Of a DNA stretch of 64,000 nt, positions 31,102 to 47,488 are shown piece by piece. Under the pieces are notes generated by a model. The model was not told the origin of the DNA. It did no database searches and was given only the letters and a program-made list of their open reading frames with translations. Position numbers and translations under genes: made by a program. Location of the stretch: IMG/VR virus record IMGVR_UViG_3300035183_000733, positions 1 through 64,000 of that record. The stretch is one strand, 5' to 3'. Each line of letters starts with the position of its first letter. Within the stretch, counting starts at the first letter, position 1.

Positions 31102-31190
31102 GGGTGGATTACCGTAGAGGCCGAACGGTCCAGACTGTTAATCTGGTGTGACGACGAGTCCCATCGCAGGTTCGAATCCTGCTCCGCCCG
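31102..31190 (+). tRNA. tRNA-Asn(GTT), long variable arm
   Basis: CCAGA-CT-GTT-AA-TCTGG, G73. Confidence 0.9.
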
Positions 31191-31226
31191 CAAAAATAGG
31201 TCCGACACGGGTAGATAGTAAATTAT

Positions 31227-31300
31227 GGACATGTAGCTCAGCAGGTCAGAGCAGCTCACTGTTAATGAGAAGGCCGGGGGTTCGAATCCCTCCTTGTCCG
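31227..31300 (+). tRNA. tRNA-Asn(GTT)
   Basis: cloverleaf. Confidence 0.95.
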
Positions 31301-31305
31301 CAAAT

Positions 31306-31380
31306 TTCTTGGGTGAGTCGGCTGTTTATTACGCGCGCAGCTGACGGTTGGAAGAAGAGGTTCGAGTCCTCCCTAAGGAG
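31306..31380 (+). ncRNA. D-armless tRNA-like element
   Basis: TTCTTGG/CTAAGGA, GAGG-TTCGAGT-CCTC, single GTCGGCTG/CAGCTGAC arm. Confidence 0.4.
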
Positions 31381-31390
31381 CAACAAATAT

Positions 31391-31480
31391 GGGTGTACGG
31401 TCGCGACGGTGGAGCGACCCCAGTCTGTAAAACTGGGACATTTAAAGAAACGCCGGGGGTTCGAAATCCCTCTACACCCA
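31391..31480 (+). tRNA. tRNA-Tyr(GTA)
   Basis: CCAGT-CT-GTA-AA-ACTGG; 8-nt T loop. Confidence 0.85.
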
Positions 31481-31485
31481 CACAT

Positions 31486-31567
31486 TGAGGAGCGCTAACG
31501 TTGGAGAGTTAGACCAGTCTGTAAAACTGGTGCTTCGGCTGAGTGGGTTCGAATCCCATCTCCTCAA
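31486..31567 (+). tRNA. tRNA-Tyr(GTA)
   Basis: cloverleaf with class II arm. Confidence 0.9.
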
Positions 31568-31574
31568 CTTAAAT

Positions 31575-31658
31575 TGTCCGATCGCCTAATGGCATGGCGC
31601 CGGGTTTTGGCCCCGGTGGGAAGTAATTCCTGTGTAGGTTCGACCCCTGCTCGGACAA
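31575..31658 (+). tRNA. tRNA-Gln(TTG), long variable arm
   Basis: CCGGG-TT-TTG-GC-CCCGG; GGGAA-GTAA-TTCCT arm. Confidence 0.9.
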
Positions 31659-31776
31659 CAAGACATCGACAGAGGTACTCGTCCGCAGACGTGTGGAAAA
31701 GTGTGTGCTTGCGACCATTAAAGTCTCTGTGTATCCCAATAGGTAGGAAGTAATTACTCTGAATGATTGGGAATAC

Positions 31777-31849
31777 TGTCCTGTAGTGTAACTGGCAACA
31801 CGTCGGGTTTTGGCCCCGAAGATTCCAGGTTCGAACCCTGGTGGGACAA
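31777..31849 (+). tRNA. tRNA-Gln(TTG)
   Basis: cloverleaf. Confidence 0.95.
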
Positions 31850-31887
31850 CAAAACGAAATTTATTTCGTATCTTTGAAGTATTATAT

Positions 31888-31960
31888 TGTCCTGTAGTTC
31901 AACTGGCAGAGCGCCTGATTCTGGATCAGGATGTTGGAGGTTCGAACCCTCCCGGGACAA
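31888..31960 (+). tRNA. tRNA-Gln(CTG)
   Basis: CCTGA-TT-CTG-GA-TCAGG. Confidence 0.95.
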
Positions 31961-32045
31961 CATGGGAATTAAGAACAACAATTAGTAGATAGATGCTGTA
32001 ATCCTAAATACACACAAAAGACTGGTGGCGGATATATTTGGAAAT

Positions 32046-44504: not shown

Positions 44505-44884
44505 ACGTCAACTATACGGGCGGTTCCCAATAACGCAGTTCGAGTGGAGCGACCACCCGTACAAGAACCACAGGCCCCTGTGCGGCGCAAGGCTGACCGG
44601 ATCATTCCTTCTCGAGCGAGACGAGTTCGAGTTCGGCAAGTTCTTCCACGGATGGTACGACGAGCGCGACCCGGTCCGACTGGTACTGCCCGATAAAGCT
44701 GTGGGACCCTGTGGCTGATGCCGTTAGGGTGGAAAGAATTTGCGGGAACGATACCTTCATTTCTGAATTTGGGTATATTTGTAACATAAAGATGTACGAG
44801 CTGATAACTGGCGAGGAATACACGCGCTGGAGATTAACAGCTACGGATTTTAAGTAGTAATTATAAACATAAAAATAGAAAACC

Positions 44885-45208
44885 ATGTCAAAAATGCACA
44901 TTCCTACATTCGACGCAGCTATGGAAGCGTTCGAAAATGGCGGTGATAAGGCCGCAAAACGTGACGAGGCAAAACTCGCGAAATTCAACCAACTGCAGAC
45001 CCGCAAGAGCGACCTTGAGATCAAGGTGTTGAAGCAGGGACAGAAGCTGCAGAAATCATACTACGACCCGTCAATCGACAGCGTTCAGGTTCTTCTGGAC
45101 CTGCATGTTCTGGAGAAGGAGCTTGAGGCCTGCAAGGTGCTCATGGAGGCGCTGTTCCCTAACGGGATCACCTTCAACAACACGCCCAAGGTTGCCGAGA
45201 AGGCTTAA
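44885..45208 (+). CDS. coiled-coil hypothetical protein
   Basis: 107-aa ORF, A-rich start region. Confidence 0.75.
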   Translation: MSKMHIPTFDAAMEAFENGGDKAAKRDEAKLAKFNQLQTRKSDLEIKVLKQGQKLQKSYYDPSIDSVQVLLDLHVLEKELEACKVLMEALFPNGITFNNTPKVAEKA

Positions 45209-45398
45209 GAAATTGCACTCGGTAAATAGGGAGTACATCCCGTTCCCGTGAGACGTGTCTGAGCTGTACACCGGTCCTAAATTGCGTAGAGAACAGTTAT
45301 CTCGGCAGGCTCGATACCTGCAGTACGATACCAATTGTAAAAAAGGCCCCCAGCGGGCCTTTTTACTTGATATATAAGAAAAGAAAAACAAGGATACA

Positions 45399-46304
45399 AT
45401 GAAGCTCAAAAGGTTCAATACGCTAAACGAAGGCAGGATGAAGGAATTACTGTACGATGTTGTCGATCAGGTAGTTCCGAAGATAGACACCAAGGAATAT
45501 CACAAGGCCAAGGACAAGGTCGCGTTCCTGAACAAGGAACTCGATAATGCCATGAGGGACATGGAGCCGAAGACCGCCGAGTACACCGACAAGTTCCGCG
45601 ACGGCATAATGGGCGCCATCATGCACCAGATGGAGGAGGCGGTAGAATCCGCCAACGTGGAGGAGGCATTCGACCGCGACGACACGTTCAAGAGCGACGA
45701 GGATTACAAGGAGGCGAGGAAGAAGCTCGACGCTTATCAGGCTGCCGTTGACGCATGGATGAAGGCGAACAAGACAAACGGCATACCGGTTGAGGTGACC
45801 AAGGATTTTCCGCACGCTGCCGAGATAACAAACGACCTCAGAAGCAAGATCGAGAAGTTTGAGTTCCTCTCGGAGGAGCCTGTCAAGTATTTCGTGTACA
45901 TCAGCGAGAAGAACAAGACTGCAACCACGTGGACCGGTCAGAAGCTCGGAGACGTGACGTTCGGCAGGGAGTTCCGCAGCAACATGGGCGACAAGAGAGT
46001 ACCGGTCAGCGTCAAGGCGTTGAACGGACTAAACTACTACGGCACGTTCTTCAAGAGCGCAGGTGATTACGCTGTGATAAAGAAATCTAAGAAGCAGACG
46101 GTACAGCAGGCACCAGCACCGCTTGAGGCCACCAATGAGGATCAGAGATATTACAGCAACGGGGTGAAACACGCGGATGGCAACGCCGTCACGAAGAGTG
46201 CCGGCACCGGGAAGATAAAGAGGTTCGCCGATATGTCGAAGGATCAGAAGAACAAAGCCGACGACAAGAAGACGAAACCGTCAAGTCCAAGGACTACCTC
46301 GTGA
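45399..46304 (+). CDS. virion-type protein with targeting-like leader (probably extends to ~46420 via frameshift)
   Basis: MKLKRFNTLNE; GATATATA at 45369. Confidence 0.7.
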   Translation: MKLKRFNTLNEGRMKELLYDVVDQVVPKIDTKEYHKAKDKVAFLNKELDNAMRDMEPKTAEYTDKFRDGIMGAIMHQMEEAVESANVEEAFDRDDTFKSDEDYKEARKKLDAYQAAVDAWMKANKTNGIPVEVTKDFPHAAEITNDLRSKIEKFEFLSEEPVKYFVYISEKNKTATTWTGQKLGDVTFGREFRSNMGDKRVPVSVKALNGLNYYGTFFKSAGDYAVIKKSKKQTVQQAPAPLEATNEDQRYYSNGVKHADGNAVTKSAGTGKIKRFADMSKDQKNKADDKKTKPSSPRTTS

Positions 46305-46557
46305 AGGGTTACAAGATGGACGAAAAGCTGGACCTTGCACAAATATCTGACGACCTGAAGTCCAACTTCAGGTCGTGGGAGCAGGATCACGACAACCTGA
46401 AAGGTATCTTGCCACCGTGATGTTAGGCGACGTGAACGTCAACGATTGGCTCGTGGAAAATAAGCTGGCGGAAAAAAAACGTATTGATTCGCGGCACTTT
46501 GATAAAAAGTTTGTACATTTGTGAAACAATTCGGATATATAAGATATAAACGATAAC

Positions 46558-46626
46558 ATGAAAAACTTGATACACATACACCATATATGGCAGCTCTCAC
46601 AGGGCCCGGCGGTGTATTCTGTATAA
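46558..46626 (+). CDS. attenuator leader peptide (His/Trp/Ile-AUA, 22 aa)
   Basis: MKNLIHIHHIWQLSQGPAVYSV*; ATA CAC ATA CAC CAT ATA TGG. Confidence 0.85.
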   Translation: MKNLIHIHHIWQLSQGPAVYSV

Positions 46627-46652
46627 AGATCCATGGTTTGATTGATTATACG

Positions 46653-46691
46653 AAAATCCCCGAGGCCAGAAGTCTCGGGGATTTTTCATTT
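46653..46691 (+). terminator. attenuator terminator of the Trp/His/Ile2 tRNA operon
   Basis: AAAATCCCCGAGGC-CAGAA-GTCTCGGGGATTTT-TCATTT. Confidence 0.85.
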
Positions 46692-46762
46692 ACGGGCGTA
46701 GTTCAATGGTAGAATAGCGGTCTCCAAAACCGTTGATGGGGGTTCGAATCCCTCCACCCGTG
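46692..46762 (+). tRNA. tRNA-Trp(CCA)
   Basis: GCGGT-CT-CCA-AA-ACCGT, G73. Confidence 0.95.
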
Positions 46763-46808
46763 GGAATATTTAAGCTGATACCTCCACGTGGTATATTCTG
46801 GTAACCCT

Positions 46809-47069
46809 TTATGGGGCTAAATTCAGCTTAGTGATTAGGATATTTTTGATAATATCAAAATACTTAGCACAGTTACGTTCTTTGAAGTATTTTAATGAGG
46901 AAGTGTCTATTATGACTAATTCTATTCCGCGCTCTAAACAGGCCTGGAATTTATGATGGTCATTGTTACGTATCTGTTCCAATTTAGCTGAACCATGGAT
47001 TAGTTCATAATGGTATATGCCGTTAAGTTCGAACGCGAGTTTCATCGATGGAATATAGATGTCGAGCTC
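46809..47069 (-). pseudogene. C-terminal fragment of a PD-(D/E)XK/DUF559-like endonuclease
   Basis: ELDIYIPSMKLAFELNGIYHY; N-terminus absent. Confidence 0.55.
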
Positions 47070-47303
47070 GGCATTGTTGCCAAGTTCGTTCGCGCGATTG
47101 CGGGAGTGCTCTACTACAAAGTGGAAGTCGATGGCGGAGCGTACGAATTCCCGGTAGACATGAACGACAAGGAAGATGTCGGCACTGCTACGTTCGACGC
47201 AGAGATCAAGGCGATAACGTTGATGCGTTACATACGCAAGGCCGACGTAAACACGACTTGCCCCCGGTGTTCCCACCGTGCTGCGGGCAGTCCAAAGCAC
47301 TAA
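47064..47303 (+). pseudogene. N-terminally truncated small phage gene
   Basis: AKFVRAIAGVLYY...GTATFDAEIKAITLMRYIRKA. Confidence 0.4.
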
Positions 47304-47314
47304 CGGTGGGACAT

Positions 47315-47400
47315 GGGGATTGTAGTCGGTAAGGGATGCCGGCCGGTTTGTGGAGCCGGAATGACAAAGTCTAATGCGGGTTCGAATCCCGTCTTTCCCC
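47315..47400 (+). tRNA. tRNA-His(GTG), atypical (long variable arm, acceptor mismatches)
   Basis: CCGGT-TT-GTG-GA-GCCGG. Confidence 0.75.
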
Positions 47401-47413
47401 CAGGTTTTTTTAT

Positions 47414-47488
47414 GGTAGACGTAGCTCAATTGGTTAGAGCGCCAGATTGTGGTTCTGGAGGTTGTGAGTTCGATCCTCATCGTTTACC
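47414..47488 (+). tRNA. tRNA-His(GTG)
   Basis: G-1:C73, cloverleaf. Confidence 0.95.

Follow-up and report, generated by a model that had tools for sequence, protein, structure and literature searches.

Transfer RNAs are conventionally divided into two structural classes, with the long variable arm of class II normally confined to tRNAs for Leu, Ser, Tyr and Sec. Two groups of described tRNAs with long variable arms carry other anticodons: the bacterial or phage allo-tRNAs and selC* tRNA-Cys recovered from metagenomes (Mukai et al. 2017, PMC5389517), and the nematode nev-tRNAs and other eukaryotic tRNAs with non-canonical variable arms (Hamashima et al., cited in PMC5389517). Phages are also a source of tRNAs that rescue translation from tRNA-cutting defences. 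The PARIS nuclease AriB cuts Lys(UUU), Thr(UGU) and Asn(GUU) at 40/41, just below the variable region, and contacts D-loop positions 16-17, while phage tRNA variants, such as the Lys, Thr and Asn tRNAs of T5, rescue translation (PMC12409363); anticodon-loop variants have been described by van den Berg et al. (PMC10264068).

Here, we examine a 64,000-nt stretch of DNA (hereafter, the window) from a phage with a genome of 373,759 bp. A sequence-only reading of the window had claimed that Asn(GTT), Gln(TTG) and His(GTG) each occur as a normal copy and a copy with a long variable arm, that Val(TAC) also has an extended arm and that one Tyr has an 8-nt T loop, and had inferred that these variants escape host tRNA nucleases or are charged by phage synthetases. 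We found that these tRNAs belong to a conserved class that recurs in many phage tRNA arrays and of which we found no published description.

Results

Long-arm tRNAs in the window and in the phage genome

The observation is correct and extends well beyond the window. The Asn, Gln, Tyr, Val and His tRNA genes described here and the GluRS-type gene lie on the plus strand. ARAGORN identified tRNA-Asn(GUU) in a long form (31102-31191, 90 nt) and a canonical form (31227-31301, 75 nt), tRNA-Gln(UUG) in a long form (31575-31659, 85 nt) and a canonical form (31777-31850, 74 nt) and tRNA-His(GUG) in a long form (47316-47401, 86 nt) and a canonical form (47415-47489, 75 nt), together with a long tRNA-Val(UAC) (43088-43174, 87 nt) beside a canonical Val(GAC) (43382-43458). 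The Rfam tRNA model matched all four long forms above its gathering score of 29 bits (Val 65.9, Gln 49.5, Asn 42.3 and His 30.4 bits), placing the extra 10-15 nt as an insertion in the variable region, and free-energy folding put a separate hairpin in the variable region of all four. The canonical Asn scored 67.6 bits; the canonical Gln(UUG), Val(GAC) and His genes, as well as a canonical Gln(CUG) (31888-31961, 74 nt), were also found by both detectors.

The variable regions of the four long forms span 14-19 nt. In the long Asn, the region is 19 nt, with a GAC/GUC hairpin and a CAUC tail, the D loop is class-II-like and the discriminator is G73, as in the canonical copy. In the long Gln, the arm is GGAA/UUCC with a GUAA loop, while the acceptor stem is nearly the same (5 of 7 bases in each strand), and the anticodon arm the same, as in the canonical copy. 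The long Val, the only Val(UAC) gene in the genome, has a 14-nt variable region with a weak stem capped by GAAA and an encoded CCA; homologous long Val genes occur in three other sequences (our labels L026, L073 and L094). The long His has a GAC/GUC arm, with G-1 (base 47315, extending the gene to 47315-47401) and C73 both present, but its acceptor stem has two U.U mismatches, making it the weakest of the four; the canonical His likewise encodes G-1 and C73 (47414-47489).

The two tRNA-Tyr(GUA) genes were assigned to class II. The first (31391-31481, 91 nt) has an 8-nt T loop (TTCGAAAT), which is real in the sequence and rare: ARAGORN draws one in only 6 of 1,209 tRNAs and, on our own reading, most of the others can be redrawn with 7 nt. 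The second (31486-31568, 83 nt) has a normal 7-nt T loop. Neither reaches the Rfam tRNA threshold, the second scoring 26.6 bits and the first finding its best match in tRNA-Sec, at 35.4 bits.

The sequence-only reading understated the case. The whole genome carries 51 tRNAs, of which 12 are long-arm tRNAs with class I anticodons—for Asn, Gln, His, Val and eight other anticodons, with Lys, Thr, Gly, Glu, Cys and Met/Ile represented elsewhere in the genome—and the window holds a third Asn(GUU) (24106-24242), whose variable region of about 65 nt contains a long hairpin (Rfam 47.8 bits; also found by ARAGORN in intron mode; cloverleaf fold, z-score -2.7).

This third Asn and another tRNA with a much larger insert (48103-48222) raise the possibility that the extra nucleotides are an intron-like insert that is removed to leave canonical mature tRNAs. 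We consider this very unlikely for the long forms, as the insert lies at positions 45/46 rather than 37/38, is far below the size of a self-splicing intron at 10-15 nt and shows no bulge-helix-bulge motif by eye, while its architecture equals that of ordinary class II arms and the D loop is adapted to it.

A discrete class with a probably selected arm

Across 1,262 phage tRNAs, variable-region length for class I anticodons is bimodal, with a main mode at 4-5 nt and a second mode at 14-19 nt, which rules out chance. The extra arm is a 3-4 bp hairpin, usually capped by a GNRA loop. Of 87 long regions, 75% form a perfect hairpin of at least 3 bp, against 27% when shuffled, although about half of the long variable regions in the wider sample show no stable hairpin; there are 51 distinct stems among 65 and GNRA loops dominate. 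RNAalifold predicted the arm on its own. In 37 Asn/Lys homologues from unrelated phages, 86.5% of cells pair, against 54.9 +/- 3.4% in shuffles, with a covariation score of 0.739 against 0.204 and 0 of 500 shuffles as high; slid controls gave 32-57%.

The core of the tRNA changes in step with the arm. The number of D-loop bases after G18G19 averages 3.90 in long class I forms, 3.86 in true class II and 2.86 in short class I, while D-stem length averages 3.28, 3.03 and 3.67, respectively; within the window this is clear for Asn and Val and less so for Gln. The arm has arisen repeatedly on different cores: those of the long Val and long Gln are closest to their own short forms, whereas that of the long Asn is closest to long Asn, long Lys and Tyr.

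Use as sole decoders

The sequence-only reading had named one finding that would overturn it—that the atypical copies are uncharged pseudogenes—and, as a class, they are not decaying pseudogenes. Stems are intact in the long Asn, Gln and Val, homologues in many unrelated phages carry compensatory changes in every stem and the invariant T-loop, D-loop and anticodon-loop bases are kept. Homologues of the long Asn occur in Cellulophaga phage phi4:1, LR756504 and IMG/VR loci. The long form is the only copy of its anticodon in 55 cases, against 30 where a short copy is also present; it is the sole Asn tRNA of the cultured phage phi4:1, where GenBank labels it tRNA-Pseudo, and it occurs as Asn and Lys pairs in Xanthomonas phage X1. 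Decay of the long forms as a group is therefore very unlikely, but individual copies may be decaying, the borderline cases being the long His, with its two mismatches and low score, and the Tyr with the aberrant T loop. In two Eremiobacterota genomes, a homologous long-arm tRNA-Thr(UGU), inside a thrU-tyrU-glyT-thrT-like cluster, is the only tRNA with a UGU anticodon loop found by a pattern search. The rule that long arms are confined to Leu, Ser, Tyr and Sec thus has exceptions in phages and in Eremiobacterota.

Identity elements and charging

The discriminator base is the same in long and short forms of each anticodon: Asn G, Lys A, Thr U, Val A, His C, Cys U and Gly U. The start of the acceptor stem also matches that of the canonical tRNA with the same anticodon; the long Thr keeps the GCC/GCU start of its acceptor stem and Ser-type GGA starts are absent. 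These findings weigh against mis-charging, in which class II bodies recognised by SerRS, LeuRS or TyrRS would recode Asn, Gln, His or Val codons, as in allo-tRNAs and nev-tRNAs. In favour of that reading, the long Asn resembles tRNA-Tyr in its D and anticodon arms and matches a Pseudomonas phage tRNA-Tyr at 76% over 98% of its length, and some bacterial MAGs (L180, L203 and L237) do carry tRNAs with Ser-type bodies and Thr or Asn anticodons. However, discriminators follow the anticodon's own amino acid—including C plus G-1 for His—rather than a single Ser, Leu or Tyr rule, the Val and Gln cores are those of their own short forms and the arm, with 3-4 bp and a 3-4 nt 3' tail, is unlike Ser arms, which are reportedly longer with a tail of 0-1 nt (work of Himeno and Asahara). 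We regard mis-charging as very unlikely.

Charging by host versus phage synthetases had been put forward in advance as a check. The complete phage genome has no match to tRNA-synt_2, tRNA-synt_2b or tRNA-synt_1, which contradicts charging by phage synthetases for Asn, His and Val; nor does the phage have a Lys, Thr or Gly synthetase. Of the four synthetase families searched for, the only one found was a GluRS-type gene (32025-33587) with a catalytic domain (PF00749, 1.3e-90) and a bacterial anticodon-binding domain (PF19269, 1.4e-18), which shows about 50% identity to genes of 636-735 kb uncultured phages. As this gene lies directly after the three Gln tRNA genes, phage charging remains possible only for Gln and Glu.

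The GluRS, together with an RlaP-type RNA-repair nucleotidyltransferase in the window, might suggest that the arm is a handle for phage-encoded synthetases or modification or repair enzymes, forming a private translation channel. The lack of a synthetase for Asn, Lys, His, Thr, Gly or Val, the absence of RtcB from the phage and the occurrence of the same long forms in phages that lack the GluRS make this very unlikely.

Discussion

The interpretation offered by the sequence-only reading is partly supported: conservation, covariation, retained identity elements and the many arrays where the long form is the only copy of its anticodon support functional variants rather than junk, charging by phage synthetases is contradicted for three of the four amino acids, and escape from host tRNA nucleases is plausible but untested.

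In our favoured explanation, held with moderate confidence, these are genuine, translation-competent tRNAs in which isoacceptors normally of class I are built on a class-II-type body, with a short hairpin arm inserted between positions 45 and 46 and an enlarged D loop. As they keep the anticodon, discriminator base and acceptor features of their own amino acid, they should be charged with the cognate amino acid by the host's synthetases, since the phage has none for most of them, and used on the ribosome like Leu, Ser and Tyr tRNAs. Our analyses demonstrate that these tRNAs exist, that their architecture is conserved, that the arm covaries, that identity elements are retained, that the class recurs in many unrelated phages and that it supplies the sole decoder found in some phages and in the two Eremiobacterota genomes; what the arm is for we can only infer. 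In this view, the arm is kept because it changes the shape of the face formed by the anticodon-stem 3' strand, the variable region and the D loop, which tRNA-directed nucleases such as the PARIS AriB dimer grip, so that phage-supplied decoders with the arm would stay intact when canonical tRNAs are cut, and carrying both a canonical and a long-arm copy of the same anticodon would hedge against different nucleases.

The link to nucleases fits the rescue of translation by phage tRNAs, and the long Asn, Lys and Thr forms match the targets of E. coli PARIS. However, nothing in the sequence shows resistance, no expression, charging or cleavage data exist and rescue of infection was not assayed; with the host and its defences unknown, the match leaves open whether these are isoacceptors of tRNAs that a defence nuclease targets in that host. 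The overlap of anticodons with PARIS targets weakened in an independently chosen sample, where Thr(UGU) was long in 0 of 13 cases, the Thr excess in our first sample having come from our search pattern. Retention of the AriB motif UAAUC differs little between long and short forms (29 of 55 against about 43 of 131, not phylogenetically independent) and is inconsistent within this genome. Furthermore, some defence nucleases target class II tRNA-Tyr, one of them in its variable loop, so a long arm does not protect in itself.

A less likely alternative, though the strongest of those considered, is that the arm is a tolerated, essentially neutral structural variant, or one that merely helps folding, which arose in some bacterial lineages or in phage arrays and spreads by gene transfer and duplication; the tRNAs would work in translation, but the arm would have no role in conflict with the host. 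The use of a long-arm Thr as an ordinary decoder in Eremiobacterota could mean that the shape is neutral, the anticodon distribution is broad in the independent sample, about half of the long regions lack a stable stem and no nuclease or repair partner was found in the phage. Against this, the repeated origin of the arm on different cores, the strong stem covariation and conserved GNRA loops, the coordinated change in the D loop and the accumulation of twelve long forms in one genome, beside canonical duplicates, all point to selection on the arm itself.

A broader reading, which we put forward only tentatively, is that phages and at least one bacterial phylum have repeatedly rebuilt class I tRNAs on a class II body as a shape-based countermeasure to tRNA-targeting immunity or toxins. 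This would be a second route of evasion, distinct from the known point substitutions in the anticodon loop, and would mean that the division of tRNAs into class I and class II is not fixed by amino-acid identity.

Among described systems, bacterial class II tRNAs, especially tRNA-Tyr, share with the long forms a variable arm with one unpaired base, a 3-4 bp stem, a small loop and a 3-4 nt tail, along with an enlarged D loop and a shortened D stem, and the long Lys, like the long Asn, resembles Tyr in its D and anticodon arms; here, however, the anticodons and discriminators belong to class I amino acids. Nuclease-resistant phage tRNAs are likewise phage-encoded extra copies of host decoders that include Lys, Thr and Asn and are often found in large arrays, but the known variants escape through point substitutions in the anticodon stem-loop and D loop and have canonical length, whereas here the whole body changes class. 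Allo-tRNAs and selC* tRNA-Cys share the combination of a long variable arm with non-Leu/Ser/Tyr anticodons, yet allo-tRNAs have 8/4 or 9/3 acceptor/T stems, Sec-like D arms and Ser identity, and many are inactive or linked to toxin-antitoxin systems. ARAGORN and Rfam both align 7-bp acceptor and 5-bp T stems in the window's tRNAs, whose arms are short, with a 2-4 nt tail, and whose discriminators are A (Gln, Val), C (His) and G (Asn). The nev-tRNAs and other eukaryotic tRNAs with non-canonical variable arms also combine a long arm with a class I anticodon, but those are Leu-type bodies charged with Leu, which causes ambiguity, while in the tRNAs described here the identity elements follow the anticodon.

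The phage genome and its tRNA genes

The 373,759-bp IMG/VR virus record, of which the window forms the first 64 kb, is rated complete by CheckV, has a G+C content of about 50% and uses the standard genetic code. ARAGORN identified 51 tRNA genes in four or five clusters, while the Rfam tRNA model returned 49 matches at E ≤ 0.001, 46 of them above its gathering score. An alternative genetic code was considered and rejected, as ORF coverage rises no more when TAG is read through than for the other stop codons, and TAG ends 46 of 368 ORFs. This holds despite the presence of two amber-suppressor tRNAs (anticodon CUA; 19877-19952 and 42187-42258, both + strand), whose anticodon arms differ from that of the phage’s tRNA-Trp by essentially one base.

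The sequence-only reading had reported normal and long-armed copies of the same tRNAs, and this observation was confirmed. ARAGORN and Rfam agree on a 90-nt and a 75-nt tRNA-Asn(GUU), an 85-nt and a 74-nt tRNA-Gln(UUG), an 86-nt and a 75-nt tRNA-His(GUG), and an 87-nt tRNA-Val(UAC). Rfam aligns the extra bases as an insertion in the variable region, where free-energy folding gives a separate hairpin in all four long forms: GAC/GUC in Asn, GGAA/UUCC with a GUAA loop in Gln, a weak stem capped by GAAA in Val, and GAC/GUC in His. The 8-nt T loop claimed for one tRNA-Tyr (31391-31481) was also found. Such loops are rare: ARAGORN draws one in only 6 of 1,209 tRNAs, and on our inspection most of the others can be redrawn with 7 nt.

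The initial observation understated the case. Genome-wide there are 12 long-arm tRNAs with class I anticodons: Asn, Gln, Val, His, Glu(UUC), Cys, Gly(UCC), Thr(UGU), Lys(UUU), Lys(CUU) and two CAU tRNAs. ATA makes up 52% of Ile codons, yet there is no tRNA-Ile(UAU); as one of the long-arm CAU tRNAs (locus L252 3714-3797, equivalent to 315713-315796 in the whole genome, G000) has a core closest to tRNA-Ile(GAU), it may be a lysidine-type Ile decoder. The window also holds a third tRNA-Asn(GUU) (24106-24242, + strand), scored by Rfam at 47.8 bits, whose variable region is about 65 nt and contains a long hairpin. A 735-kb uncultured phage similarly has a 111-nt tRNA with a long variable-region hairpin (locus L004 10051-10161), together with two more tRNA-model matches of 99 and 118 nt, which we did not resolve. 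A tRNA-like element at 48103-48222 (+ strand) has good acceptor and T arms but an aberrant middle; Rfam scores it at 33 bits and ARAGORN calls it Thr(GGU) with an intron. At 24580-24654 (+ strand) lies a 75-nt class-I-shaped tRNA with anticodon ACU, which belongs to a Ser codon box but lacks the long arm that SerRS needs.

That the atypical copies might be pseudogenes had been set out beforehand as the point on which their interpretation would fall. Taken individually, Asn-long, Gln-long and Val-long look sound. His-long is the weakest, with two U.U mismatches and 30.4 bits, and the tRNA-Tyr with the 8-nt T loop and its neighbour both fall below the Rfam tRNA cut-off; any of these three could be impaired.

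Recurrence in other phages

Close relatives of this phage were sought through the GluRS gene that lies next to the Gln tRNAs, through a 610-aa ORF and among five 350–395 kb IMG/VR phages that also carry long tRNAs, but none were found. The GluRS gene is about 50% identical to genes of 636–735 kb uncultured phages; the GluRS neighbourhoods of LR756501 and LR756504 are not syntenic with the window. In the absence of close relatives, orthologue-by-orthologue selection tests were not made on the window’s own Gln, His and Val copies. BLAST searches of Gln-long and His-long against cultured phages found nothing, and Val-long gave only generic tRNA matches. The host was not identified, although relatives of the tRNAs point loosely to Bacteroidota phages.

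The distant 636–735 kb phages also carry long Met, Val, Thr, Asn and Lys tRNAs. A scan of IMG/VR with a motif from the 3′ tail of the arm returned over a hundred phage tRNA arrays, and in the 1,262 tRNAs that they hold, variable-region length for class I anticodons is bimodal, at 4–5 nt and at 14–19 nt. An independent sample, chosen through a tRNA-Phe motif, gave 18 long forms among 300 class I tRNAs (6%), although these frequencies are rough. This genome, at 12 of 51, is the richest that we saw. Cultured phages have long forms too: in Cellulophaga phage phi4:1, the only tRNA-Asn is an 89-nt long form that GenBank labels tRNA-Pseudo, while Xanthomonas phage X1 has long-plus-canonical pairs for Asn and Lys(CUU). 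The converse oddity is also common in phage arrays (L004, L008, L250, L251 and many other IMG/VR loci), where tRNAs with Leu anticodons have a variable loop of 4–6 nt (74–78 nt in total), yet keep a class II type D loop.

Structure and conservation of the extra arm

The common architecture of the arm consists of one unpaired base, a 3–4 bp stem, a tetraloop (GAAA, GUAA or GCAA in 34 of about 72 folded cases) and a 3–4 nt tail, such as CAUC or CAAC. Of 87 long regions, 75% form a perfect hairpin, against 27% after shuffling, and there are 51 different stems among 65. On an alignment of 37 long Asn and Lys tRNAs, RNAalifold predicts the arm unaided. In this alignment, the three arm pairs are formed in 86.5% of cells, against 54.9 ± 3.4% in shuffles, and the covariation score is 0.739 against 0.204, with 0 of 500 shuffles as high; slid controls reach only 32–57%. 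The extra arm is thus under selection. The D loop changes with the arm: bases after G18G19 average 3.90 in long class I forms, 3.86 in true class II tRNAs and 2.86 in short class I forms, and the D stem shortens likewise. The whole core, not just the loop, has therefore taken the class II form.

Some long arms are conserved in sequence rather than only in pairing. Gly(UCC) long forms of three phages (L252 2320-2409, or G000 314319-314408, in this phage, and loci L014 4956 and L024 2924) share almost the same 17–18 nt variable region. Ile(UAU) long forms (genes in loci L060, L065, L066, L113, L125 and L129) have covarying stems capped by a conserved 7-nt loop (CAGAUUA or close variants), which hints at a specific binding partner.

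The origins of the long forms are multiple. The cores of the window’s Val-long and Gln-long are closest to their own short forms, whereas the Asn-long core is closest to other long Asn and Lys tRNAs and to Tyr, and matches a Pseudomonas phage tRNA-Tyr at 76%. Repeated acquisition of the same architecture suggests that the arm itself is what selection favours.

Amino-acid identity and charging

For every anticodon, the discriminator base of the long forms equals that of the short forms: Asn G, Lys A, Thr U, Val A, His C, Cys U and Gly U. Long Thr keeps the GCC/GCU start of its acceptor stem, and the GGA start typical of Ser is not seen. Both His genes encode G-1 opposite C73. The long Gln shares most of its acceptor stem (5 of 7 bases in each strand), and its anticodon arm, with its canonical neighbour. 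This argues for cognate charging and against mis-charging with Ser, Leu or Tyr of the allo-tRNA or nev-tRNA type. Candidates for mis-charging, distinct from the phage class described here, were seen on three bacterial MAG contigs (L180, L203 and L237), which carry tRNAs with a Ser-type acceptor stem, G73 and a long Ser-like arm, but with Thr or Asn anticodons.

The phage has no tRNA-synt_2 (Asn, Lys, Asp), no tRNA-synt_2b (His, Thr, Gly, Pro, Ser) and no tRNA-synt_1 (Val, Ile, Leu), so host enzymes must charge these tRNAs. Only the GluRS at 32025-33587 could serve the Gln or Glu forms.

Evidence for use in translation

In arrays of at least 10 tRNAs, the long form is the only copy of its anticodon in 55 cases, against 30 in which a short copy is also present. 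Expression was not examined. A genome scan also found a homologous long-arm tRNA-Thr(UGU) of 83–88 nt in chromosomes of Eremiobacterota/Vulcanimicrobiota (loci L133, L137, L140, L146, L172, L183, L189, L208 and L216). Its arm is, for example, CCC/GGG with a GAAA loop and a CAC tail, and it covaries between species. In most of these loci the gene lies in a Thr-Tyr-Gly(-Thr) tRNA cluster, and in two of these genomes it appears to be the only UGU decoder, being the only tRNA found with a UGU anticodon loop.

Possible role of the arm

The sequence-only reading had proposed that the variants escape host tRNA nucleases or are charged by phage synthetases, and this interpretation was only partly supported. 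While the existence of the long forms, their recurrence and the selection on the arm rest on the sequence analyses, what the arm is for is our inference. Phage tRNAs are now known to rescue translation from tRNA-cutting defences. PARIS AriB cuts E. coli Lys(UUU), Thr(UGU) and Asn(GUU) between positions 40 and 41 and, in an AlphaFold 3 model, also holds D-loop bases 16–17 (PMC12409363). A hairpin projecting three bases downstream of that cut site, together with a remodelled D loop, would plausibly obstruct such a grip.

We favour this reading but hold it loosely. The strong excess of Thr(UGU) in the first sample was produced by our own search motif and disappeared in the sample chosen through tRNA-Phe; the apparent excess of Thr, Lys and Asn among long forms was likewise partly created by the motif and faded, and we no longer use anticodon bias towards PARIS targets as evidence. 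Retention of the AriB motif UAAUC differs only weakly between long and short forms, in a comparison that was not phylogenetically controlled. Other defences target class II tRNA-Tyr, one of them in its variable loop. The Eremiobacterota case shows that the shape can be ordinary, and a neutral or folding-related explanation is the main rival.

A search for a phage-borne tRNA nuclease or ligase partner found no DUF4435 (AriB) and no RtcB in the phage, a further reason for holding this reading loosely. A compact ABC ATPase at 60369-60995 (+ strand), whose best defence-library matches are AriA, GajA and PtuA, has no recognisable nuclease partner nearby; a type II restriction-enzyme-like ORF and an RlaP RNA-repair nucleotidyltransferase lie close by (55144-55782, + strand; 56185-57675, − strand). 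The phage also encodes a protein with a glutamate-synthase domain, a SET-domain protein and a TrkA-N/ion-channel protein (53663-55090, − strand; 48916-49587, + strand; 14125-15336, + strand).

Implications and comparison with known systems

The assignment of long variable arms to Leu, Ser, Tyr and Sec is treated as a near-universal rule in bacteria, and annotation pipelines use it and label exceptions as pseudogenes, as happened for phage phi4:1. A conserved, covarying set of long-arm Asn, Lys, Thr, Val, Gln, His, Gly, Cys, Met and Ile tRNAs implies that ordinary synthetases, EF-Tu and ribosomes would be accepting the class II shape for many more amino acids than assumed. It also gives the phage-tRNA and anti-defence field a concrete, testable structural variable and offers natural scaffolds for tRNA engineering. 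As cultured phage-host pairs carrying these tRNAs exist (Cellulophaga phage phi4:1 and Xanthomonas phage X1), the question can be taken to the bench.

Literature searches, confined to open-access papers, found no description of long-arm class I tRNAs in phages. The nearest known systems are the allo-tRNAs (PMC5389517), from whose type of mis-charging the identity elements of the long forms argue away, and the phage tRNAs described as evading through changes in the anticodon loop (PMC10264068), whereas here the whole body of the tRNA changes class.
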